A stretch of DNA of 62,731 nt, the filler included, from Sluysia triapertura (taxonomy: Eukaryota): the NCBI GenBank assembly GCA_046118255.1. It is 4 parts of 4 records of this genome, joined end to end, with 100 filler letters (N's around TTAATTAATTAA, not from the genome) between each part and the next. Parts side by side here need not be neighbours in the genome. Positions count along the whole stretch, not along the records: positions 1 to 15,775 come from JBJNIA010219469.1; 3 more parts are not named here. The stretch is one strand, 5' to 3'. Position 1 is the first letter of the stretch. Each line of letters begins with the position of its first letter. This document shows positions 1 to 15,775 of this stretch, one piece after another. A program made the translations under genes and the position numbers. The notes under the pieces were generated by a model. The model saw nothing but the letters and a program-made list of their open reading frames with translations, was not told where the DNA came from and did not search any database.

Positions 1-641
1 GTACAGAATTAATTTATTGTGTTATCAAGTAAACGTTAAAAATAACCAATCGATTTACTTAGACTTTAAGTTAAGTTCTAAAATTCCAAAACCTAGTAAT
101 ACGTCTCCAAATTTGGCATAAAACGTATATACTAGGCGAACTGACCTATCAGATAATTTGTTAAGTATAAGGAAATACTAGCAATAATAATGATAACGAT
201 AACGTAATTATTATACATTTTAGAATAATGATGATGATGTTGTGATAATTATGTACAATGATTATGTTTGTTTTTTGAATGAGTCAAGTAGTTTGTTTAA
301 TGTTCTGTGTATGTATGAGATATTTTTATGTGATGAAGCATTGATATTTTGATATGATTTCCCAACACTACATTATGAAATAAAATCTAAAAATGAATTT
401 ATACTGTTATAATAAATCATTAATTGAACTTTAATACGTTTTTTGAAAAATATAAATTAAATTTAAAATTACTCATAGAGAAATATACTGTTTCAAATTA
501 CCTTAACTCCTTGTTTAAATATACCTTAATTATATGTATTTAATTATTAATTTCCTTTACTTAATTTTACATCAATTATAAATATTTATTTTAATATTTT
601 AAATTTATTGCTTTCTTTTTGAAGAAAGGCTTTTTTTAATC

Positions 642-1844
642 ATGGGTGAAAATGACAAGAAAAGTGTTTTAAAAAATATTAGAAAGCAATTGGAATTTTA
701 TTTTAGTGAGGGTAATTTACCAAGAGATGATTTTATGCAACAATGTATGCGTAATTCACAATACAATTCACTTTCAATTGAAGATTTATTAAAATTTAAT
801 AGATTGAAAGAATTAGGTGCTACAAATAATTTAATAATAGAAGCTGTTAAAAAATCTAAAATACTTATTCTTGATGAGTCTAATACAGGAGTAAAACGAA
901 AAATTGATTTATGTAATCTAAAACATATTGATTCTAGAACTATCTATATTTGCGGTATCATGTCAGAAGAAGATTCTAATAATGATTATACATTAGTTAA
1001 TAAAAGAATAAAGAAGATATTTAATTCCTTTGGAAATGTAATAAGAATCGATTTACCAAAATATAATTCTACGAAAATGCTAAGAGGTTTTGGATTTGTT
1101 GAATTTATGACCAAAACTGCAGCAAGAGCAGCCCTTTCAGTGTATAAGCCTCATTTAGAAGAAGATAGAAAAGTGTCAGCTTGGAGTTATTTTTCATTTA
1201 AAAATACTCAATATTGTCAGTCACTGAAGCAATATTCGATGTTGTGTAATTCTAAAGAGAAATCATTTGTAGAAAAATTTTTAGGTGAAGGAAGGAAAAA
1301 CAAAATTTCTAATTTAGTTGCTATTTCAAAGAAAGAATGGTTAAAATTCAGATCAGAATTCTATGAGGCACAAAAGAAGCATTTAAATGAAATACGTGAT
1401 AAAATTTCAGCTTTGCAGAATAAAACAGAAAAAATGATTTGTAGTCACAAAAAGCATGAAAGATTACTAAACGATGAAAAAAATTCAGAAGAAATGAATA
1501 ACGCAAAGGATACAAAAGAAATCTCATATACTGGTAATATTGTTTATATATTATTATCAAATAATAGTACAAAAAAGAACTTAAAAGACAAAATAGGAAA
1601 CTATAGAAATATTGTAATGTATATTGATTTTAAAAATTTGGAAAATGAAGGATTTATTCGATTTAATAATGCGAAAGACGCAGAAACTTTTGTGAATAGT
1701 TTTGACGATGATGTATATTTTACAGAATTACGAATTTTAAGTGAAACTGAAGAGAATGAATATCAACAAAGAATTGAAGATGACAAACTTATGCGCAGAG
1801 AAAATCAGAAACGTAAAAAAGAACGAAAAAAATTAAAATTGTAA
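642..1844 (+). CDS. LARP7: La-related protein 7 (La motif, RRM1, C-terminal xRRM); single exon
   Basis: La motif QLEFYFSEGNLPRDDF; RRM LPKYNSTKMLRGFGFVEF; LARP7-type helix LVAISKKEWLKFRSEFYEAQK; xRRM VMYIDF...EGFIRF...ILSETEENEYQQRI; AATAAA just after the stop. Confidence 0.88.
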   Translation: MGENDKKSVLKNIRKQLEFYFSEGNLPRDDFMQQCMRNSQYNSLSIEDLLKFNRLKELGATNNLIIEAVKKSKILILDESNTGVKRKIDLCNLKHIDSRTIYICGIMSEEDSNNDYTLVNKRIKKIFNSFGNVIRIDLPKYNSTKMLRGFGFVEFMTKTAARAALSVYKPHLEEDRKVSAWSYFSFKNTQYCQSLKQYSMLCNSKEKSFVEKFLGEGRKNKISNLVAISKKEWLKFRSEFYEAQKKHLNEIRDKISALQNKTEKMICSHKKHERLLNDEKNSEEMNNAKDTKEISYTGNIVYILLSNNSTKKNLKDKIGNYRNIVMYIDFKNLENEGFIRFNNAKDAETFVNSFDDDVYFTELRILSETEENEYQQRIEDDKLMRRENQKRKKERKKLKL

Positions 1845-3212
1845 ATAAAAATACTATTTAATTATATTTTTGTAGAATATCTTTTAAAATCTACTGTTTA
1901 TTTAAATTTTGAATAATAAACTTTTTCAATATAAACATTTAATATAAATTATGCATAAATGGTAACTAATAGGTATAATAATTTAGGATTGAGATTCAAT
2001 AGATAACAATTGATAAAATATCCAATAACTTCATGGATTCTGAATATTTTTCAATTAAAAGGAATGTTGAATTTTTACAAGCAAATCAGAATAGTTTGCT
2101 CCGATTTATTATCTCATTCTATTTAGAGGATGTGTTTCTAATTGGCTTTATTGTAAAAGCTTTTCAAAAAGGTTAATTAAACCAACTTAATTAAGAACAC
2201 AATGTCGAGTTATTTTAAATTATTCTAGATTTATTCTAGATCTAGTTTTGTGCGCAACATGATATTAGGTGTGAGTTTATTTATGTCCAATAAAGTATGG
2301 TCACAACAGTGTTAAAAATTCAATATGTTAGGACAATTATAATTTACGTGAAATTGATTTTCAAAACTAATACAAAATTTCGGAAAATAGAACTTTAGAT
2401 CCCTATATTTAACAAAAAATCTAAAATAAAATTTGGTTTCACATTAGTACACGTAAAAATTACACTATAATGCATATAATAGTAATAGTAACAGGTCACG
2501 ACGGCCTGAACAGCACCGCACTTGAATTGTCCGCGTAGCTCTGTAATTTAACTGGTTCCGCAAAACATTCGATTTGGTCAATAGTTTGCACTTTATTAAA
2601 TTAGAAATACATTTGGATAGTTTATAATAAAATGATTAAACTTAATAAGCAACAAATTGTTAATTTTACAATTTTTATTTATGAGTTTTAGTACAAAATT
2701 ACTTTTAAGAATCATTAAATATGACAAAGACTTTTATATTATAACTATAGCGTTTAGTAAATACACAAGGGAGGATAAAATCAGAAGAAAAGGGTGAATT
2801 AAAAACATAAAGAGAAAATTGATGATAAAATTTGCTAACTTCATTGCACAAACTTTGATTGTAATACATAAAGGAACAAATATTGTTAACAGATCTGAAC
2901 ATTGAAATTCTGATATATATATATATATATAAGTGATGTAATTTGATTAGGAGTTAGATGAACACCAAAAAGGATGTGATATATTTATATTCAGGAGTTT
3001 TACACTCAATTGGCACTTTTTATTAAAATATGAGCAAACTCAAATAATTACGATGTAATTGACTTATCCTTGTGATATTGTATGTATTTCGTCAGGAAAG
3101 CATTGCAGCTTCATATTGATTTCTAGAATACAATTTAGTGATATATTAAACCCATTTAGCATGCCCAAACAGTAAACTTGATGAAATATTTCATGTCTTT
3201 CTAATGAATCAT

Positions 3213-3257
3213 AAAATGGACTGACCGGAGATCGAAACCGGGACCTCTCGCTGCGCA
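3213..3257 (-). repeat. 3' half of a tRNA-Ala-like unit, related to the tRNA-LTR element at 12706-13081
   Basis: Minus strand reads TGCGCAGCGAGAGGTCCCGGTTTCGATCTCCGGTCAGTCCATTTT, sharing TGCGCA, a B-box-like motif and CCGGTCAGTCCATTTT with both LTRs. Confidence 0.7.
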
Positions 3258-3801
3258 TTTCGATGAATTGAATTGAAAACAAAAGCGAGTACGTACATTA
3301 ATAGGATACGTAATCATATTTATATGGTATAATAAATATAAATAAAGGGTCATATTTATATAAAAAGTAGTTAATGTAATAAGGCTAATACTGATTGTCC
3401 ATTTAAGAAGTTGTTCGTGCTGTTGCTGCCACTTGTGCTGTTGGTGATAAAGAACATGTTAATAATTGTTGTTAATAATAATGGGGCCACTAGTATACCA
3501 CTAATAAGACAGAAAAAACAAAGAAAGATATTAAATCACAATCACACCAATGATAAATCGCAGACATACAATTAAGTGGGTGAAATAAAGAAATGAGAAT
3601 GTAGGAAAATAAAGAAGGGAAAAGGATAAAAAAGAATAGAAGAAATAAATAAAAACTATTAAATGCAAAATGAAAAGAAGAAGGAAATGAAAGTGAAAAT
3701 GTGAAAGAGAATATCAGTTGTTGTATAACAGATTGAGTATTTCCAAGAACCAAAATATTAAAGATTAAAAGCCCCCAAGATAGAGGATAAACAAACGCAT
3801 T

Positions 3802-4100
3802 TGTAGTGGCCAACCTTTAATTTAAAATCCAAATTAATTTTCTTTATTCGCAATAGCACATGTATTGACATTTAATATTTTTTTACCTACTCATATTATT
3901 GGAACCTTTTTACACTTTAAAACATTTAAATTCACAATCTTTCAATATCCAAACTATACATACATTCAAATGCCATCAATATACATTTAAAAATTCGTTT
4001 TAAACATCTTATTAATTATCTCATAACATTAGAACCACAATTTACATCTTAAATTATCATTGAAAACGTGAAAATTAATTCAAAACATTTTCACTTGTTT
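3802..4100 (+). repeat. Dispersed repeat starting TGTAGTGGCCAAC, followed by A/C-skewed sequence (other starts at 5506, 47707, 51087); possible LTR/TIR end
   Basis: Four near-identical TGT(A/G)G(T/C)GGCCAAC starts on two contigs; right boundary is approximate. Confidence 0.45.
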
Positions 4101-4248
4101 TTATGTAAAGAAATGGAATAAACAAAAGAAAGATCATGTAGATAGAGCAAGGAATTCATGCATTTTAAATTTAATATTATCATTTATTATTATTTTGTTA
4201 CATATTTCGTTTTCATTTTACATCATCATCGTTATTATTATTATTTAA

Positions 4249-4249
<1 letters not shown>

Positions 4250-4302
<53 letters not shown>
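4250..4302. repeat. (ATT)n microsatellite; similar tracts at about 6412-6457, 43029-43083, 43997-44060 and 62661-62731
   Basis: Direct reading. Confidence 0.95.
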
Positions 4303-4303
<1 letters not shown>

Positions 4304-6410
4304 ACCATTATTTATGAAATCACCATTATCAATAATTTATCATCACCTCTATAGCCACTTAATTCTCATTTTATTAAAAGCAACTCAATTAAAATCAGTC
4401 CACATCACTTAGTAACTGTCGGCAAATATAAGTTACTTAATACATAATTAATACTTAGCATTTGGCACACATACAAGCATATAGGCTTGCAACATTATAT
4501 ATGTAATACAGTAGTTGATTGGACAAGTCTTTCTCAGCATTATAATTCTACTTACCGTGATTGGACGCCCAATCAACATTAACATCTTAACATAGAATAC
4601 TAAAAATTAAAAAAAGGTTCTAACAAAATTTTATTGGTTATTAGAATTGTAACATTTCTCTTACACGAGTCAGAGGCAACATAATTAGGTAACATTAAAA
4701 AATAACTAGTTAAAAAATAATTATTGTTAAAAATTGAGTTATTCGTTAAACAACGTAATTATTCAATTTTAAAAGTATAACGTCCACGCTAAAAATTAAT
4801 AAAACTTCAATATTAATTTTCTTTTGGCAATTAGGTATCAAAATTTAATTTATGTAGCGTTGAAAATCGAAAAGGAAGATATGAGAGATTCATGAAAAGT
4901 AATTTCAGTGATTTGGAAAAATCGACTAGTTCAGTGCGAGGTCGTAATAGAGTTTATATTAACGTACAAAGTGAAAGGCCTATTGAACGAAAAGCAGATG
5001 CATTTGAGATTATATCAAGACATTAATTATCTAGATAATGAAGTGATAGGAAAAGAATGTACAACTGTTCGTCATGAAACTTTGTTTGATTCAAATCGTT
5101 CATTCTTTAAGATGATGGCATTAGTTGAAACCATATATTATTCTCCAAATAGTTAAGTTGGATACTTATGCACACAATATTTTTATCAACCAGTAACAGA
5201 TAGAAGACTTATATACAGTAATGATATACTATTAGATGAGAAAAATAGTAATAATAATTGTAAGGAGGACAATGGATCTGTATATATATCAATTACAAGT
5301 ACAAATTCGGTTAAGAAAAGGAGAAAATTTTAATGATGGAACAATTAAATATGCGGAGAGTCTGCAACAAAGTCATTCTAACAAACGATTCAAGAATAAT
5401 TGAAAATATACCATTTATGAAACTATATCGTATCATTCTTACGATGAAATTACGAATAAATTTATCAATATTAGTATTATATATTTCCCAATAACCATTC
5501 CTGGATGTGGTGGCCAACATATTACTTTTAAAAGATTTTATTAAAACATTTTCTTTTGAACATTACTAAACCACATACATTTTCAAAATATACAATATAC
5601 ATTTTAAAATTCATTAAAACATTTTATACATAGTTCCATGTCAATATAATCAAAATCATACATTTCAACATCACACTCACCCTCAAAATCTACAACTCAC
5701 ATTGTTAAATTCACAGTTCACTACTAACATAACTAAAAGCATATCCTTTTCAACATCACATAACCTTTTAGAATTTGTCAAAACCGTTTCTATATCTTAT
5801 TTCTTTTCAGATTCATTAAAATCAATTTCCATTTATCAAAAAATTTTAAGTTCACAATCTCATAACATTCAAAGCATCAATGTATATTTAAACAATTCAT
5901 CTAACATTTAACAATTCAATTTCAACCAAATCCGAAATTAACTACTAGACATTTACAAATCAATTCAAACATTCCAAATTCTTAATTATTTATCATTTTA
6001 TCCCTAACATCTCAGAAAGATAATATTACTTAAAATTTAAAGAAAATAAATCACATTTTCAACATTGTACAACCACGTCTTCAACGTACCAAAAGCTAAA
6101 CTATAACTTATCTCTTTTTCATACACTAAACTACACTCTTTTAATGCATTTTAAAGTCACATTTGCAAACAGCTAAACATTATTTCATTCACATCATCAA
6201 TGTATATTTAAAATCCAAGTAAAATATTTATATCATTTCAAAATACTTAAATCGTAAGTTTCTACATCATTACATTTAACCTTCAAACATCATTAAAGAT
6301 ATTTAACTATTTTTAAGTAGATTCAAATATGTTAAGAAATATTAAAGAAATAAAGAAAGTTCATGTTAATTTTCAAGAATTATAAAGAATTTATGCGTTA
6401 ATAATAATAA

Positions 6411-6458
<48 letters not shown>

Positions 6459-7779
6459 CATTTTATTTTTATCACTGTTAAATTAAATTAAGTATTCAAT
6501 CTGTTGTGTTTTTGTTTTGTTTACTAATATCCCTCTTTAATAACTAAAAATCAAATAAAACTGAATCTCGATATATTCTCATATAACAATTACAAAAATC
6601 AAATCTTTTATATGACAAATATAATTCTATAAATCAACCTCTTTATATTACAATTATAGTTCTATAGATCAAACTTTTTAATTCTTTAAATCAAATTCTT
6701 TAATAAATTATTGTTCAAATTTTTAAAAAACGCAGGGGTTACACAACATAAATGCTGTTACCACAAATAAAAATAAAATGAATCCTAGCTCTCTACTAAA
6801 CACGTAAACTTATCTTTATTTTAGTATTATTACTGAAGAGAAAGATTCAATGAGTGTTATTCACAACTCAATTGAATCCAGCGTCCTTACAGCAAGAAGT
6901 TGTTTCAATAGTTCTGATTTTTGGGATATTGACTATTTTTTGTCGCTTGTTACTGTTATCGTTTTTCTATTTGTGTTTTGTTGCAAAAAGTTATCTCTTT
7001 ATATTGTATCTAGATAAGTGTCAGATAGTCGGGAATTTAATTTAATTATTTTACATGTCTACTACACATGCTATTGTCGTAGAGCCGGTTTTATGCCGAC
7101 CAATTACTAAGATGAATTTCAATATTAATTTCCAAGGAATTTTCGACTTTAGATTGCCCGACAGTTATCTGGAGATAATGAATTTTGTGAAGAACAAACC
7201 CATATCTCTTTCAAATACTCGAATCGCAATTTAATACCACAATTGGAATTATACAAACAAATATAAAATACATCATCCTAATTTACCCATATTTATAATC
7301 TAATATAAAATTTATTTTAATAACAATATTTTATATCACACATAAACACGTTAACGGTACGTCACACGTCAATCTCACTAGCGTATACTGACTTGTTTCT
7401 CTGCAAGCTTTAATCTGATATATACTTTATTAATGCTCAGTCATTGGAACGTATTTAATCTTTAATTTTAAATATTTTAAAATACTTTTAACAGGGTTCG
7501 ATTACAGTAAGCGTCTTACAACGTATCGTTGGCACTTCTGTAACTAATAAGTTAAAGATCACTTAAAAATAACGTTTCTGTCTAATAAACTAAATGAGGA
7601 GGGTCTTACAACTACTAAATAATTTAATTTCTAATTTAATAATTAAATAGAGCAAAAACTCTAATTCGTTTATTAAAAAGAATATAAAAAAGCTAAAAAA
7701 CTTAGAATAGTAAATTATGAGTTTAGATGAAATAATCAATTTTAAAGATTAAAGCTCCAAGAAGTTTAAGTAGAGTTTA

Positions 7780-8243
7780 CCCCTCAATATATCGGGGACT
7801 TAAAAATTTTATAAATCAATGTAAAATTTAAGTTGATTTTATAAATATATAATTCACCAAAATCTGATAGAAATTCCACAATTGATTGCCGGATATCTGG
7901 TAATTGTGACGCTTACTAATTTCACAATAATCCTGAATGGCGATTTTTATTGTAAGATGCTAGTTTATATACTAGTCATCATCCAATGATAATCAATGGA
8001 ATGTTCCAAAATATTCTAGAACATTCTAGAAGCTTCTGATCTATTATTAGAAGCGTATTTTCTACTTTATAAATTTTATTTTCTTTTTTGGAAAATAATT
8101 GTTTTATAAGTAATTTTAAAAATTAATAACTGATTTTAAGATGTTTTATGGTTTTAATTAATTTTTTGATAATTTTAAATATTTTGAATTAATTTTAAGG
8201 TGTCATTTTAACATTTTAAAGTTATTTTATAGGGTTTGTCACC
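7780..8243 (-). mobile_element. Solo-LTR-like repeat, copy 1, with heat-shock element
   Basis: Shares CCCTCAATATATCGGGGA and a ~100-bp TATA/CCAAT/HSE block with 10239-10774; left boundary approximate. Confidence 0.6.
7998..8037. promoter_or_regulatory. Heat-shock element, 7 of 8 nGAAn/nTTCn units
   Basis: gGAAt gTTCc aAAAt aTTCt aGAAc aTTCt aGAAg cTTCt; minus-strand TATATAAA at 7964-7971. Confidence 0.75.
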
Positions 8244-8669
8244 TTTATTACAAATATTATTAATAATTATTATTAATTACAATATTAATATTATTATAAA
8301 TATTATTATTAATTACATTTTTAACTATTTGTATAAAATTTTTAATTTTATAAAAAAATTTTTTAATTTTGTAAAAAATTTGTATTAATTTTTTAATTTT
8401 ATTTTTCTAAAATTATTTTTATTAATTTAATTTTCATTATTAAATTAATTTTTTATTTAATTTTTATTAATTTAATTCTTGATCAAGACATGACCAAAGA
8501 CCAGTCCTTGTAATTTAACATAATACGAATAGGTTTTCAAACAAATCTTTTGTATACCCTAACTTTGCTTTTTATATTAAATTGTAATATTAATTTATTA
8601 TACTATTATTTTTATATTTAGTTGCTATTTATGTAACTATATAGTTATTTTATATCATATAGAAATCAC

Positions 8670-11600
8670 TTTTTTCATATTGATACCGGCATTAACGTGA
8701 CCATTGGCATGTAAATGCCTTAGCTCTGTTACTGTTTCAATAGGATTTAAACCTGCATTCTCTGATAAAGTATAAGATATAATGTCCATAGCAGCCGCAA
8801 ATGACCTAAAGCAGTATTGGTGTTCTCCAGAAATTGAATTCGAATACAAAGCCATTTTTTGAGCTACTTCAATTTCAGGTGCACCACCTCCAGCAATTAA
8901 GGCTCTGAAATTATATATTATGTTAAAACAAATTAAATAAAAATATCTTATACTTTTTCTTTACTAAGCATCTAATAACGCATAGAGCGTCATGTAGTGA
9001 ACGTTCAGCTTCATCTAATACCAATTTGTTTGATCCTCTTAACAATATTGATACAGTTTTGTATTGATGTTTAATACCAGTAACGTGTACAATTTTCGAA
9101 GCACCTGCTTGAATTTCTTCAACATGCGTTGCACTACCTAGACAATCAGCAGTAAAATTTTCAATATTTGCAATTGGTTTACATCCTATAGTCTAATAAT
9201 AATATTTCAAATATAATTTTATTTATGCAATTATGTAGTAACTATTGTAAGTAAAATAAAATAATGAAAAATTAAAATAGTACTTTACAAATGAATTCTG
9301 TTTTTTCTTTTGGAATAGATTTAACAACCATTATATTAACTTTACCAAAGAAATGTAAAGCTAAATCATTTACTGAATCACGTAATACGTTTTTTTGTAC
9401 TAGTAAAACATTGCAACCAGTATTTTTAATTTTTTTGACAATATCAAGTATATATTTGCGTTCGTCTTTTAACACTCGATCCATTTGTGTGTAGTCAGAT
9501 ACAACAACACTTTGATCCATCTAAAGGGAAAATGTTTTGGTGATATTTAAAATAAAAACTATTTAAGATCTATAGTTATAAGTCATGTAAAATAAAAAGG
9601 GTCCATTTTGACAATAAACACATTAATTTAAGAAATAAGCAAGAAAACTAAAATATTTGTTCATAAAATATTTCGATAAGAGCCTGATATTTTGACTCAC
9701 TCTGGCATGCAGTTAGACATAAATAAAGCATAAACAATGTAAAATCCTTAATCATTAAATTAAGTCAATAAATTAATTAATATTCTTAAAAATATTACGC
9801 ATTTGCGATAATTTAGATTAAATTATCGATTAATAAATAATAAATTATAACTGTGAAGAAAATTCGACATAATTATGTCATAAAATTATCAGAATTTTAA
9901 ATAGTATTATTTTTAGTATATAATAAATAATTTATATAAACTATCTCTTATGAACTTCTGTGGTTTCTCTAACATTTAACCTACGGCAAAATATTTTTTA
10001 GCAGGGTATAGTAGGCAAATAATTATCAATGTACACTTTGTCTTTGATCATAAAAATTAAATTCTTAATATTACAAAAAAAGTTCTAAATCTGATGAATT
10101 TATTGAATTCCTTACTTAAGCATAATAATGAAACTACAAATTCAAAACATGTTTATTAAGAAATTACGAAATTTAAAATGTACAAATTTTTATAGGGTAA
10201 AGTATAGAAATGAAGAGAAAAAAAATAAAATAAAATTTTGCAATAAAAACCTTGAGTCTTTAATTGTTTTTTATAAAATAAATTAAGTATATTTTAACCC
10301 TCAATATATCGGGGAACTTATTATATTTTCAAAAAATTAAATCTGAGTGTCTTTTATGATAATAATTCTTGACAATTAGTATCGCCTTAATAAAAAATAA
10401 CTTACGCTAAGCAAGGATTGAAATAGTGAATAACATTGCCACAATTATTAAAATATGATGTATTATCTAAACCAGTATTGATTATTGAAAAAACAACAAA
10501 ATCAAAAATTACGTTGAAATCAAGATGGCGACTAATAAATAATGGTTGTAAATTGTGTCTTTATGATTGTACTGATGCTAGTTTATATACTAGTCATCAT
10601 CCAATAGGAATTGATGGAATGTTCCAGAATATTCTAGAACATTCTGGAAGCTTCTATTCTATATTTAGAAGCGAATTTCCCTTTTTCGAAAATAAAGTTA
10701 TTTTCAAAGATTTTTAAATGATATTAGAGTGTTAAAATGGAATTTTTAAATGATTTTAGAGGGTTGTGATGACAAACTAACAGAACTAAAAAGATATAAA
10801 GAAGTACAAAGATATCGCTGAAACAAGTTTTGTTTTATCAAGATTTGTTTTAAAAAGTAAATTAAATTAACATTATCTATATTATTAATTAAAAAATTAA
10901 TCCACAAAATTAAACATCAATTTTCTTGACAATTCATGATAAAAACAAGTTAGAGAATGAAAAAGAAACAATAAATAACTAAAATTAGGCTTTTTTGGAG
11001 CACTATGAACATCTTCGTCTAGAATTATTTCGATATTGTACTTATACATTTGAAAACCAAATGACTTCAACATTAGAAAATAAATTATAAACGAACTTCT
11101 GCTTTCGGTGGTGCTACACAAAATTGAATAAATCCAATTTTAGCATTATCAACTGAAAATATATTACAAAGACTTTCAACGCGACGATCAATCAAAAGAC
11201 CATCAACAAGTTCAGTGTCTTCTACAGTGCCACCAATTTTATTAACAATATTAATATCTTCCAAATGAACACAATTTGGTAAATAATCATCTCGGATACG
11301 TAACACAGCATCAACTGCAATCGGTGATAAAACCGAAGAATATTGTGACACTACTTTCGAATTAAGTGATGTTGATGCTATTTTCAATAAATTTGCACGA
11401 TCCTAAACAATATAAATAAAATTAGTATCGATAATTGTGAATATAAATATAAAATAGATTTAGAAATATAATTTTATTAATAAGGGAAGTTTCCAAACTT
11501 GGTATACAAGTAAAGTATCAAAACTATGAAAAGTGATACATTACATTTTTCATCAGATTTAATTTTAACTGAGTTACAGCTACCAAAAATTCAAAAAAAT

Positions 11601-14600
11601 TAATTTTTTAACTTGAATATCTTTAGAATTGTTAAGAATATTTTGAAATAAATTTCAAATTGGAATTCAGCATAAAAATTCTTTCGACGGCATTATTTTT
11701 TCTTTTTTGTGCTATTAATTTGTGTTTTTCAACGTTTCATGTTTCATCTTCAACAAGTTTAATTTTGTTTTTATTTCTATTTACTATAAAGCGGTTAAAT
11801 AAGTTTACTTTTCTTAACACTTCTTCCCTTTTCCTTGTTATTGGCTGTATGTGCAGGTACAGAAGCACAAAATCATTATTCATAACTTTTGATACTCTAT
11901 TTTAATGCCAGGTTTGGTCATGATCTGAGTTTACCTTGGACACCTCTCTTGTAAGCGATATTGTTAGAATGTACTAGCATCTTTGTGGAGTGTTAAGCTT
12001 TGTGAGTTTGTACATTATAAAATTAAAAGCTTCTTTGAAAGATAGCCTTATTTTGACAATAAAATCATAATAAAACAATATTAATATTAATTTTATAAAA
12101 ATAAAGTAGAATTTCTAAGTACATCTCCGTAATAATTATTAACTATGTGTTGGATAATTTTAACAATAATCAAATCAAATTCCTTAACAGATTTTTAATA
12201 ACTTCAATAAATTAAACATGAATACCTCAAAAATAGATATTATTTCAACAATCTAATTGTTATAATCCGAATAATTTAAAAAATTTGTAAACAGTAAATT
12301 ACGTTAATAAAATTTATACTTGTAGATCTACTGGTACTGACATAGCTTCTATAATTTCCTTGGCTTTTTGAGCAGCCATATAAAATGCTTCAGTAATAGT
12401 AGTTGGATGAAGACCCTTAGAAAGTAATTTATCACTGGCATCCAAAAGAGCACCTGCCAAGACCACAACTGTTGTTGTACCATCTCCAGCTTCTATATCT
12501 TGCGCTTTTGATAATTCAACCAACATTTTGGCAGCTGGATGTAATAATTTCATACGATTTAAAATGGTAGCTCCATCATTTGTTATTGTAACATCACCTT
12601 TACCTTCTTGAATCTAAATTTATATAATTGAAGTTTTGTGTACAATTATAAAAGTTTTATATAAAATTATATTCTAATCATTGAACATTTTAAATTTAAA
12701 TTAATTGTTGTGGTAAAAGGCCTAAAAAGTGCTAAGTAGTATAATTGAATATATAGCTCAGTGGTAGAGCATCGACTGCGCAGACGATGGAGTCGGGTTC
12801 GATCCCCGGTCAGTCCATTTTACGAAGTCTAACATTTGGTGAGCCCACATATCGAATACCATCTGATATTGAGTTAATGATTTATATGATGTTTGAGGAC
12901 AAACATATTTGAATTGGGTGAGATATGTTGGGGTAAAGAGGCTTAAGGTGCCATTTGGTCAAATTGACAATAATAAAATAGAACTGTTAGACGGGGCTGA
13001 TAGCTCAGTGGTAGAGCGTCGACTGCGCAGACGATGATCGCGAGTTCGAACCCCGGTCAGTCCATTTTACGAAGTCTAACATAATAATAATGAAAGAAAT
13101 TGTATTATTTTATTCATTTAGTATTGAATTAAAGAAGTGATCTACTTTCTTAATAAATGAATAAACATAAAGACAATTAGGATTCTTGTTACAAAATAGA
13201 GCTATATAAAAATTAAACTACTCACTAAAGTGTTGTCTTGCCTCAAATGCACTTTCATCAGTTTTCAAAAAATTCGACACTATTAAACAATCTGAAAATT
13301 AATCGTGTAATACTTTATGATGAATCTGACAATAAAATTTATAATTTTCTATTATATATTTAACAATGACTTTTTTGATTTAGGATGTGCAGTTCAGAAT
13401 TAGTTGGACAAACATTAAGACCGATATTTTTAGCGGGTAATTGTAAATGAATAAAAACAAAAAGCATACTTCGACTTTTACGTCATATTTGTTCCTTTAT
13501 CAATAACGTTACTGTGATCACTGAACGATGTATCTATTTTTTAGTGACTTCATCATCTGGTTGTTAATTATCTGATAGACTTTATTCATTTCATCGATAT
13601 ACTTTTGTTTATAAAAGTCAGAATTCAAAGTTGGTTCATCATAGTCATTTTGTGCATTATTTTAAATCTAAATAGTACGTTTCCAGAAATTATGTCGCAC
13701 CACTTACTTTGACTCATTATCTTTAAATAACTTCTAACATTTACCTAATTCATCGTTGATAAGTTCATCTGTTATTCAATATCTCCATATTTCGCATTTT
13801 CTTCGGTGACCAAAGTCACGTAATAATAAATTAAGAATAAATGTATTGGTTCTTTAGTCGCAATCAACGCTACCATTGTCTAGCTTGACTAGACTTGAAA
13901 AATTGTATATTTTTATTATTCATTGACATTGCTTATGTAAAAGCCACTTATTTAAAAAGCTGTACTATTAATTAAACCACTATGACTTTAGTACACGTTG
14001 ATTTTTCGAAAGCACATTCGGGAGCTTGCACCAGCACTAACAGACTAATTATTCTTTAAATAACTATCCATATCTGATACTAAATGAGAATTTTTTTCTA
14101 AGATTGTCTGAAAGATCAACGTAGAACAATGAAAATGAGGATATGCTGCTTTTTTCTTTGCTTTCTAAATTACAATGGATGCACCCCATTAATAGGTATA
14201 TAAGCTTCTTCAAATTAAATGTCATAATATATTATAACTTTAGTTTCATTTAACGGGAATCTAACTTTTAATAATTGTAATTGTGAATAACATTTCATTG
14301 AAGCCAACATTGTTAGATCTTCAGTATTGGCAAATAAAGCAGATTTTCTTATATCGAATATTTAATATAATTACTTTGAGGTAATAAAGCAGCAATCACA
14401 AGAGCTTCTTTATATTCTAGTGAAATCCTAGTGAAAACCTTGCAATTGTTCTAATAGTTTTTGAAACAATAGTGTTATCAATTATTTTTTCATATGAAAT
14501 GTGAATTGGCAGCTACTGTAGCCAAATCCATATTTCGTTGGGCAATTAGCTAAATTAATGTGCATTTTTAAAATATAATTAAAAATTAAAATATAATCAA

Positions 14601-15247
14601 GTTATAAATTCTTAATCTTTTTCATTTACAGGTACAATAAAGAACAAAGATTTACCTAAATAAGCCATAGAAAATTTAAATTGGGATTAAAAAATGTTGC
14701 AATTTGAAGTTACGTTCTAAAACTCATTCCGAAAATCTGATGAGACCGAAATAATAATTGGCGGCTATTTAATAATGTACTGGTATATTTCATATAAAAT
14801 TAAATAAGCACTACATACTAACCATTTTATCCATTCCTTTGGGCCCTAAACTTGTTCTTATAGCATCTGCCACAGCTAAATATTAATTTAATTGAAAATT
14901 CGGTAGAGACAACTTAACATCAAAATTATCTCAACATTAACTCATAATTTATACATTGAGAATTTATTAAATTATTTTATGAACTGATATTATAAATTTT
15001 AGTATTCAAAATTATTAATGTAAAAACCATTATAATTATTTATATTTAAATTTCGTAATAAGAAAGTTTTACAATAAATTTAATTAAAATATAGCAAAAA
15101 AATAATTTTAATAAACTAAAGTTTACCTTTAGAAGCCACTATATTACTATTTCGAATAGCGGTTGGCTTATTTCTGTCACTGAATTCTTGTTTAGTATCA
15201 ACTTTATTTTGATGAGACGAAGTAACATTAGATCCAGAGTCCGACAT
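8670..15247 (-). CDS. CCT4: T-complex protein 1 subunit delta (chaperonin CCT4). Exons 15247-15127, 14875-14823, 12613-12320, 11402-11097, 9520-9284, 9192-8954, 8904-8670; final exon not found
   Basis: Spliced translation gives [88 protein letters not shown]; GT-AG junctions with consistent phases. Confidence 0.95.
10239..10774 (-). mobile_element. Solo-LTR-like repeat, copy 2, in CCT4 intron 4
   Basis: Minus strand begins TGTCATCACAACCCT and ends AGGTTTTTATTGCA (TG...CA, imperfect inverted ends); internal HSE-CCAAT-TATA; no clean TSD. Confidence 0.6.
10616..10655. promoter_or_regulatory. Perfect 8-unit heat-shock element
   Basis: gGAAt gTTCc aGAAt aTTCt aGAAc aTTCt gGAAg cTTCt; CCAAT at 10601-10605; minus-strand TATATAAA at 10582-10589. 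Confidence 0.85.
12754..12817 (+). ncRNA. tRNA-Ala-like pseudo-tRNA in LTR1 (5' acceptor strand lost)
   Basis: A box TAGCTCAGTGG, B box GGTTCGATCC, ends TCAGTCCA then TTTT. Confidence 0.7.
12994..13064 (+). ncRNA. tRNA-Ala-like pseudo-tRNA in LTR2
   Basis: Acceptor stem GGGCTGA/TCAGTCC with G3:U70 and discriminator A; D arm GCTC/GAGC; anticodon and T stems imperfect; followed by TTTT. Confidence 0.75.
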
Positions 15248-15659
15248 GTTAAAAACTATAGTGATTTTGTTTATTGATTATTTATAAAATTAATTTATAC
15301 AAATCAAATTCATACAAAATACCGTTACTAGTTTTATTTGTACTGTAAGAATACAAATTAAAATCAATTTGAAAATAATTTTAAAGTAAAAGTAATTTAA
15401 TTAAGACTTTAATTAAAAGTAACGTGCAGAAACAGATGCGTCATGAAATGCACCGTTTTTAGGATAAACGAAAATAAGTTATGGTTGTAAAATAAAACTA
15501 ACCAAACTTGACTAGCAATAAGAAAAACTATTGTGGTTAATTCCAATTGTGCTGTTCCAATTTTTATTTGCTTTTATTTTCTTAAATTAGCTGAATTGCT
15601 TTCCTTAATTTTGAATTTTTGAGCTTTCTTAAAAGTATTGATAATACTATAAAAACATC

Positions 15660-15775
15660 TTAACCCTTTCACTACCAAACCTTTTTTGGTCCCATTTTTA
15701 ATATTAACTTAATTGGCTAATAACTTATGGCCATGGCATAATTGAAAAAATGTAACCGACCAGCTGATTTCACGT
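15660..15775 (+). mobile_element. Possible piggyBac-type terminus at the contig end
   Basis: TTAA followed by CCCTTTCACTACC; other end not visible. Confidence 0.35.

Follow-up and report, generated by a model that had tools for sequence, protein, structure and literature searches.

Probable solo long terminal repeats with a heat-shock-type promoter at the CCT4 gene of Sluysia triapertura

According to a 2025 paper, heat-shock elements (HSEs) that lie in the promoter of a long terminal repeat (LTR) have been validated experimentally in no more than two systems, namely ONSEN of crucifers and four Macrostomum lignano families (PMC12801592). The Macrostomum families are of the Ty3 type, have between one and four canonical HSEs that lie upstream of the start site, and are induced more than 250-fold by heat, and mutation of the HSEs abolishes this induction (PMC12801592). 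The LTRs of ONSEN/ATCOPIA78 of Arabidopsis and of related COPIA elements of the Brassicaceae contain HSEs, heat activates these elements via heat-shock factors (HSFs) (PMC5059998, PMC13602373), and in Caenorhabditis the Helitrons (Helitron1_CE) carry a substantial share of the HSEs of the genome (PMC6927752). Here we describe a repeat with a heat-shock-type promoter that occurs twice at the chaperonin gene CCT4 (TCP-1 delta) of Sluysia triapertura (assembly GCA_046118255.1). The window, the whole stretch of DNA analysed, is 62,731 nucleotides long with filler and joins 4 parts of 4 records; positions 1 to 15,775 come from JBJNIA010219469.1, and this 15.8-kb piece holds CCT4 and both copies of the repeat.

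We consider it probable that the two repeats represent solo LTRs from a single LTR-retrotransposon family with a heat-shock-type promoter, and that they came to lie at CCT4 by chance. The observations given below cover the anatomy, mobility, LTR identity, copy number and conservation pattern of this family; genome-wide counts refer to the whole assembly (619 Mb, 263,945 contigs).

The promoter block and its family

To find the boundaries of the repeat, both window copies were aligned with 11 others of the genome. In this alignment the unit measures ~830-990 bp, and in the window ~810-830 bp, a size also given by the copy bounded by a target-site duplication (TSD), and the ~500 bp proposed in the first-pass annotation of this DNA is therefore too short. 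Copy 2 (9956-10782, minus strand) is a complete solo LTR of 827 bp in a CCT4 intron. The TSD GAAC stands directly outside it at 9952-9955 and 10783-10786, its flanks have no relation to the family, and its minus-strand termini read 5' TGTTAG ... CCACAGAA 3', the CA of the U5 side being mutated at one terminal base. Copy 1 (~7445-8255, minus strand, ends +/-5 bp as extrapolated from the termini of a full copy) is an older solo LTR, 71% identical over 7479-8354 to the full copy in locus L027; its ends are degraded and no TSD is recognisable at them. The two copies are 61% identical overall and 84% identical in a 131-bp core, indicating that they belong to different subfamilies and derive from separate insertion events. 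The U3 part of the unit is ~300 nt long and AT-rich, with the terminal palindrome GGTTGTCATCACAACC, and has the heat-shock-type promoter at its end; the R/U5 part measures 500-680 nt, differs between subfamilies and closes with the conserved U5 end ...AAACCACAGCA. A small palindrome in the R/U5 part, CCCTCAATATATCGGGG (10298-10314 in copy 2, minus strand), is conserved in many copies and forms the repeat D4 with 7781-7797.

The plus strand of copy 2 reads GGAAT GTTCC AGAAT ATTCT AGAAC ATTCT GGAAG CTTCT at 10616-10655, that is, eight contiguous alternating nGAAn/nTTCn pentamers, all eight intact. The array of copy 1 (7998-8037) has kept 7 of 8, the third unit being mutated to AAAAT. Between array and TATA box lies a CCAAT box, which is ATTGG in the promoter direction (10601-10605 in copy 2, 7983-7987 in copy 1), and the TATA box TATATAAA is found at 10582-10589 and 7964-7971, respectively. 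From TTTATATA, which is the minus-strand TATATAAA, to the array the distance is exactly 26 nt in both copies. The minus-strand order HSE, ATTGG, TATATAAA is that of a promoter firing leftward, and the promoters of both copies thus point along the minus strand, which is also the strand of the CCT4 exons. Direct reading and pattern scans hence agree with the first-pass annotation on the two arrays, the CCAAT box, the minus-strand TATA box at 26 nt and the direction shared with CCT4.

The strict trimer pattern nGAAnnTTCnnGAAn has 9 matches in the window, confined to 8014-8036 and 10617-10654; the chance expectation from 200 dinucleotide shuffles is 0.21, and no shuffle had as many as 9. The same pattern found no trimeric HSE in the 15.8-kb piece outside the two arrays, which holds also for the 3.1 kb that precede the first recognised CCT4 exon. 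Transcription of copy 2 is predicted to start around 10550-10560, ~25-30 nt beyond TATATAAA. The motif GCCAT near the expected start (10523-10531 in copy 2, minus strand; plus strand AAGATGGCG, promoter direction CGCCATCTT) may be a YY1/initiator-type element.

The promoter block was surveyed in 75 copies whose TATA block could be recognised. Of these, 70 have a perfect trimeric HSE no more than 80 nt upstream of the TATA block, TATATAAA is intact in 55 and ATTGG in 56, and in 41 a GCCAT stands 45 nt or less from TATA, in most cases 20-24 nt past it. The array has 6 or 8 pentamers and differs between copies by 10-bp steps. The AATAAA that had been taken as an LTR-like feature of copy 1 is really present after its TATA box; it is specific to that copy, being found within 40 nt in only 6 of the 75, and was rejected as a conserved poly(A) signal.

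Used as a query, the 131-bp core gave 2,283 first-look candidates genome-wide, and the 40 that were scored are 86-93% identical if the window's own 100% self-match is set aside. The U5 end gave 2,228 candidates and the U3 end 1,134; over the core and U5 searches together, identity of the scored candidates ranges from 82 to 93%. A 28-nt segment of the array has 2,527 matches when up to 2 mismatches are allowed (reversed control 0). Five of the 40 core matches (contigs C16210, C195334, C203036, C263076 and C193998) end at query position 7-8, which is 10566-10567 of the window, 16 nt past TATA, where the subfamilies begin to diverge; in C16210 and C195334 this point is 3 nt from the contig start. 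The common stop is probably a break in the assembly graph, possibly the U3/R boundary, at which it would hint only indirectly.

A generic pattern of five perfect pentamers, GAAnnTTCnnGAAnnTTCnnGAA, has 5,016 matches in the genome (reversed control 22). Family copies in the sampled loci have 2.3 such matches per 28-mer match (93 to 40), and 2.3 x 2,527 predicts ~5,900, which is the whole of the observed number; the calibration is rough, since the ratio ranges from 1.0 to 2.7 between sample sets. Within this rough calibration, most or all of the genome's long HSE arrays can be ascribed to the family. The 28-mer and GAAnnTTCnnGAAnnTTCnnGAA counts amount to thousands of strong predicted sites, in agreement with the earlier proposal that the family spreads HSF-type sites. 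In practice, a scan of this genome for HSE motifs would return mostly this repeat, rather than real heat-shock genes.

The conservation of the core was compared between and within subfamilies. Copy 2 and 20 copies of another subfamily are 82% identical in the core, 74% in the distal U3 and 56-59% in R/U5, and copies 1 and 2 share 84% in the core against 52-68% elsewhere; identity between subfamilies is thus 68-74% in the distal U3 and 52-59% in R/U5. Since the core is the part best kept between subfamilies, replicating lineages retained the promoter core as the remainder drifted; this is an argument that the core was of importance to the element's propagation. Within one subfamily the mean pairwise column identity is ~0.85 along the unit, with 0.85 in the array, 0.90 from CCAAT to TATA and 0.93-0.97 in other blocks. 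These column identities revealed no extra conservation of the HSE after insertion, and inserted copies seem to decay neutrally. The HSE is accordingly conserved above its flanks, as had been suggested, between subfamilies (82-84% against 52-59%), but not within a subfamily (~0.85 throughout).

It is possible, though in our view unlikely, that the array is a mere 10-bp palindromic tandem repeat (TTCTAGAAnn) subject to slippage, with no function in HSF binding, and that the element is not heat-inducible. The 10-bp steps between arrays of 6 and 8 pentamers and the lack of excess conservation after insertion speak for such a repeat, and two HSE-bearing Macrostomum families were uninduced (PMC12801592). 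Against it stand the fixed distance of 26 nt to TATA with a CCAAT box in between and the status of the core as the best-kept module between subfamilies; the TTCnnGAA spacing is specific to HSF, and in the two LTR systems that have been tested such arrays were needed for induction.

The position at CCT4

Matches to the TCP-1/cpn60 profile place coding exons of CCT4 at 12326-12613, 11091-11405, 9281-9523, 8953-9198 and 8670-8906 on the minus strand. The exon region 11085-11387, compared with solved TCP-1 chains, gave E 4e-26 with delta and 3e-9 with epsilon, indicating that the gene is CCT4. Copy 2 lies in the intron between the exons that cover positions 116-218 and 216-291 of the Cpn60_TCP1 profile. 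Copy 1 is situated downstream of both the exon that ends at 8670 and a tentative mini-exon of 12 codons at 8527-8562 (minus strand); this mini-exon was picked up by motif scan as LGYTKDLFENLF with an AG acceptor and a GTATTA donor, and which we take to resemble the CCT4 stretch GxITDMLEENVV. Neither several motif scans of 1-8560 nor a profile search found the last ~30 codons of CCT4, with their conserved ...ILKIDD... tail, and copy 1 is either in the last CCT4 intron or 3' of the gene. Orphan C-terminal TCP-1 exons were seen on contigs C210397, C55702 and C41549.

The first-pass annotation had proposed a special link between the repeat and CCT4, to be given up if very many copies were scattered at random. 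At least 2,527 near-intact arrays exist, and with at least 2,500 copies there is one per 250 kb or less. A second copy within ~1.5 kb was found for 2 of 84 other sampled copies (~2%), which corresponds to dozens of close pairs genome-wide, and a special link to CCT4 is therefore unsupported. The two copies are best explained as ordinary members of the family that landed independently, from two subfamilies and at two ages, with their position a matter of chance. Their HSEs should accordingly not be taken as native regulation of CCT4.

That one or both LTRs were selected because their HSEs make CCT4 heat-inducible, whether as an enhancer (intronic or 3') or as an alternative promoter, seems to us very unlikely. 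Such exaptation would fit the orientation of both copies along CCT4 and the fact that they hold the only trimeric HSEs of the contig, the 3.1 kb before the first recognised exon being free of them; in mouse, moreover, Cct genes with HSEs in the first intron are activated by HSF1/2 (Kubota 1999, as relayed in PMC9117761). Against it stand the thousands of near-intact arrays elsewhere in the genome, with close pairs occurring at about the rate expected from their density, and the state of copy 1, which is decayed, has lost its ends and has one pentamer mutated. The HSE also decays within a subfamily as its flanks do, and a start in copy 2 would give a CCT4 message lacking the first ~215 codons. 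The support that remains for co-option is weak.

Identity of the units as solo LTRs

In the promoter direction the unit runs 5' TGTTAGGTTGTCATCACAACC ... AAAAACCACAGCA 3', with sharp bounds in ~55 sampled termini. The flanks of 29 copies sampled on the U5 side and 26 on the U3 side are mutually unrelated, apart from two chance-like partial pairs, one per side, and no internal sequence common to the copies was found in these flanks beside either terminus. Fifteen of 27 unique complete copies have a perfect 4-bp TSD of varied sequence, and 4 more agree in three of the four bases, whereas an offset control gave none. TG...CA ends with a duplication of fixed length, 4 bp, indicate insertion by an integrase, as would suit a solo LTR or, with lower probability, a DNA element of the Ginger kind. 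The TG...CA ends had been noted before in copy 2; they are indeed a property of the family, but they lie at the true outer boundaries, where copy 2 itself has its CA mutated.

The presence of a primer-binding site (PBS) was examined by a pattern search for the U5 end followed by TGG within 5 nt. Among mostly random flanks, several contigs showed the recurrent sequence ...CCACAGCA-AAATT-TGGCGCC(C/T)GAATTGGA, and in the sequences read the PBS-like TGGCGCCYGAATTGGA follows the LTR end after 5 nt, the spacer being AAATT. Genome-wide, CACAGCA-N3-7-TGGCGCC occurs in 37 places (control 0), nearly always with a spacer of 5 nt; examples are contigs C30642, C32910, C183402, C189630, C196630 and C242214. 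Six of the 37 places also have, at the right distance, the U5 motif TTGCCGTAGG (control 0), which copy 2 carries at 9980-9989. We take TGGCGCCCGAA to be the start of a classical tRNA-Lys primer-binding site, TGGCGCC(C/T)GAA being presumably complementary to the 3' end of a tRNA-Lys-type tRNA. A tRNA-type PBS after the U5 end identifies the units as LTRs and decides for them over a Ginger-like element. Judged by these termini and flanks, the copies are nearly all solo LTRs; a few tens still have at least the beginning of the internal part. The sharp TG...CA ends, the 4-bp TSDs, the thousands of dispersed copies with unrelated flanks and the PBS in at least 37 places bear out the earlier view of a mobile, LTR-like element.

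We regard it as most improbable that the units are a non-autonomous cut-and-paste element, mobilised for instance by a Ginger-type or other integrase-like DDE transposase (these also give a 4-bp TSD and TGT termini): it would suit such an element that none of the ~55 sampled termini adjoins common internal sequence, that the TSD is 4 bp long with one terminus TGTTA and that two units are joined head to tail in locus L010, but Ginger elements combine their 4-bp TSD and TGTNR start with terminal inverted repeats of tens of bp, while the ends here share only a weak inverted repeat of ~12 nt that matches at ~9/12 with a gap, the tRNA-type PBS stands 5 nt after the U5 end at no fewer than 37 places, the U5 motif of the family being present at 6 of these, and an internal TATA promoter with a long transcribed part behind it resembles an LTR.

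A Helitron, suggested by a CCCC...GGGG palindrome near an earlier left boundary, was rejected: the palindrome is internal and the true ends lie ~340 bp further out, and in place of insertion at A/T without a TSD, with 5' TC and 3' CTRR, the copies have varied 4-bp TSDs and TG...CA ends. Also rejected, as an internal part of the element, was the region that loci L006 and L016 have in common beside their LTRs; it has neither PBS nor polypurine tract and is probably another repeat.

Two further arrangements were seen at family copies. In L010 (1688-1720, contig C195228) two LTR units stand head to tail (...CTAATA|CTGTGGTG...) with nothing internal between them and the final CA of U5 lost. In L031 (8384-8594, contig C241459), 836 bp downstream of a family LTR, there is a sequence with a similar terminal palindrome start, TGGTAGGTTGTTATCACAAACC, and ATTGG, and with no HSE; BLAST against a family copy did not detect it, and the contig ends nearby. 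This may represent a related family of LTRs that lacks the heat-shock array.

The reading as solo LTRs of a family with a heat-shock-type promoter has to be held against several points that count to its disadvantage. No full-length element, with two LTRs around gag-pol, was found among the sequences read, a set that leaves aside the interiors of the PBS-bearing contigs. The pattern for a polypurine tract gave three exact matches to a run of 9 purines abutting the 5' terminus, a count without a baseline. That the PBS-bearing LTRs carry the HSE core is suggested by the U5 motifs that they share with the family. In copies selected by their U5 end, a sample unbiased for the promoter, the 28-mer is kept in only 6 of 29 and at least one perfect trimer in 20 of 29, and many family copies are probably dead as promoters; the same sample brings the total to probably several thousand copies, perhaps ~10,000. 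Binding of HSF, induction by heat, the start site and any effect on CCT4 are what we infer from motifs and their arrangement. Finally, the sense orientation of both copies at the same chaperone gene is treated here as chance, but two copies are few enough to leave selection possible.

If both repeats are solo LTRs of this kind, the steps that produced them would be the following. The element would be inserted by its integrase, giving the TG...CA ends and the 4-bp target duplication, and later recombination between its two LTRs would leave a single LTR. Under heat stress HSF would become active and bind the array, and Pol II would transcribe the element; the 6-8 inverted units would offer room for two or more HSF trimers, and the CCAAT box would be of the NF-Y type. 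Retrotransposition would thereby be coupled to stress, as in ONSEN and the Ty3 elements of Macrostomum.

Other features of the window and comparison with known systems

An Rfam scan of the whole piece returned only two tRNA-like matches, both outside the element, and no ribozyme. These tRNA-like units (12747-12835 and 12994-13082, plus strand) lie just upstream of CCT4, 247 bp apart, are 92% identical and have a common non-tRNA tail, CCATTTTACGAAGTCTAACAT; they score 41 and 28.4 bits, and ARAGORN calls one of them, with an odd 4-base anticodon loop. A third, partial and inverted copy is found 9.5 kb away at 3209-3257. The units look like a tRNA-derived family of short interspersed elements or tRNA pseudogenes. 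Convergent with CCT4, an intronless open reading frame (ORF) of 400 amino acids with La/RRM/xRRM domains (642-1844, plus strand) is LARP7-like; its nearest relatives in the database are identical at only 47% (unnamed) and 39% (annelid, the best named), which marks the genome as that of an animal and its lineage as poorly sampled. Two long (ATT)n/(AAT)n microsatellites form the inverted repeat I1 at 4238-4310 and 6391-6462, 2.1 kb apart. Elsewhere in the assembly there are five full-length HSP70 ORFs (contigs C239472, C109770, C130560, C185395 and C240150) and three full-length Cpn60/TCP-1 ORFs (C75940, C138638 and C193338) without stops or introns, whereas the CCT4 of the window is split into many exons. 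These could be inducible genes, organellar or bacterial-type chaperonins, or contaminant DNA.

The order HSE, CCAAT, TATA is the classical layout of hsp70 promoters in Xenopus and human HSP70. The promoter block described here has the same order of HSE, CCAAT/NF-Y and TATA with similarly close spacing, and differs in lying inside a mobile LTR.

Heat-activated LTR elements have their HSEs in U3 near TATA, and here the array stands 26 nt upstream of TATATAAA in both window copies. As far as the sequence tells, the family works like ONSEN and the Macrostomum elements. In ONSEN the HSEs of the LTR tie transcription of the element to the host heat-shock factor, as is predicted here, and solo LTRs can pass the response on to neighbouring genes. 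ONSEN is, however, a plant Ty1/copia element with few copies and a TSD of 5 bp, whereas the present family is found in an animal, with a 4-bp TSD, a tRNA-Lys-type PBS and thousands of copies.

The likeness to the Caenorhabditis Helitrons is that a single transposon family is the source of a large part of the genome's HSEs and brings them close to genes. Helitrons are rolling-circle elements without a TSD, with 5' TC and 3' CTRR and a 3' hairpin, in contrast to the TG...CA ends, 4-bp TSDs and PBS found here. It is conceivable, although we think it doubtful, that one LTR family supplied almost all long HSF-type arrays of this genome (~3,000 with at least five perfect pentamers) and that a number of its solo LTRs, perhaps the intronic one of CCT4 among them, are now heat-inducible promoters or enhancers of host genes. 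In that case a sizeable part of the host heat-shock regulon would have been rewired, on a scale exceeding that of the Caenorhabditis Helitrons.

The closest likeness in position is to the Ty3/Mdg4 elements of Macrostomum (Mag, CsRN1 and Gmr1/Osvaldo clades), which are also animal LTR elements with HSEs just upstream of TATA and the start site. The present family differs from them in having one long array of 6-8 pentamers together with a CCAAT box, in consisting of thousands of mostly solo LTRs that are ~15% diverged from each other, and in its host, a different animal with a much more AT-rich genome (25% GC in the window). Were the family heat-inducible, it would be a further independent case in animals, one whose promoter is unusually complete and whose copy number is very high, and would offer a system for asking how often retroelements evolve stress-coupled promoters and how many host genes gain a heat response from solo LTRs.

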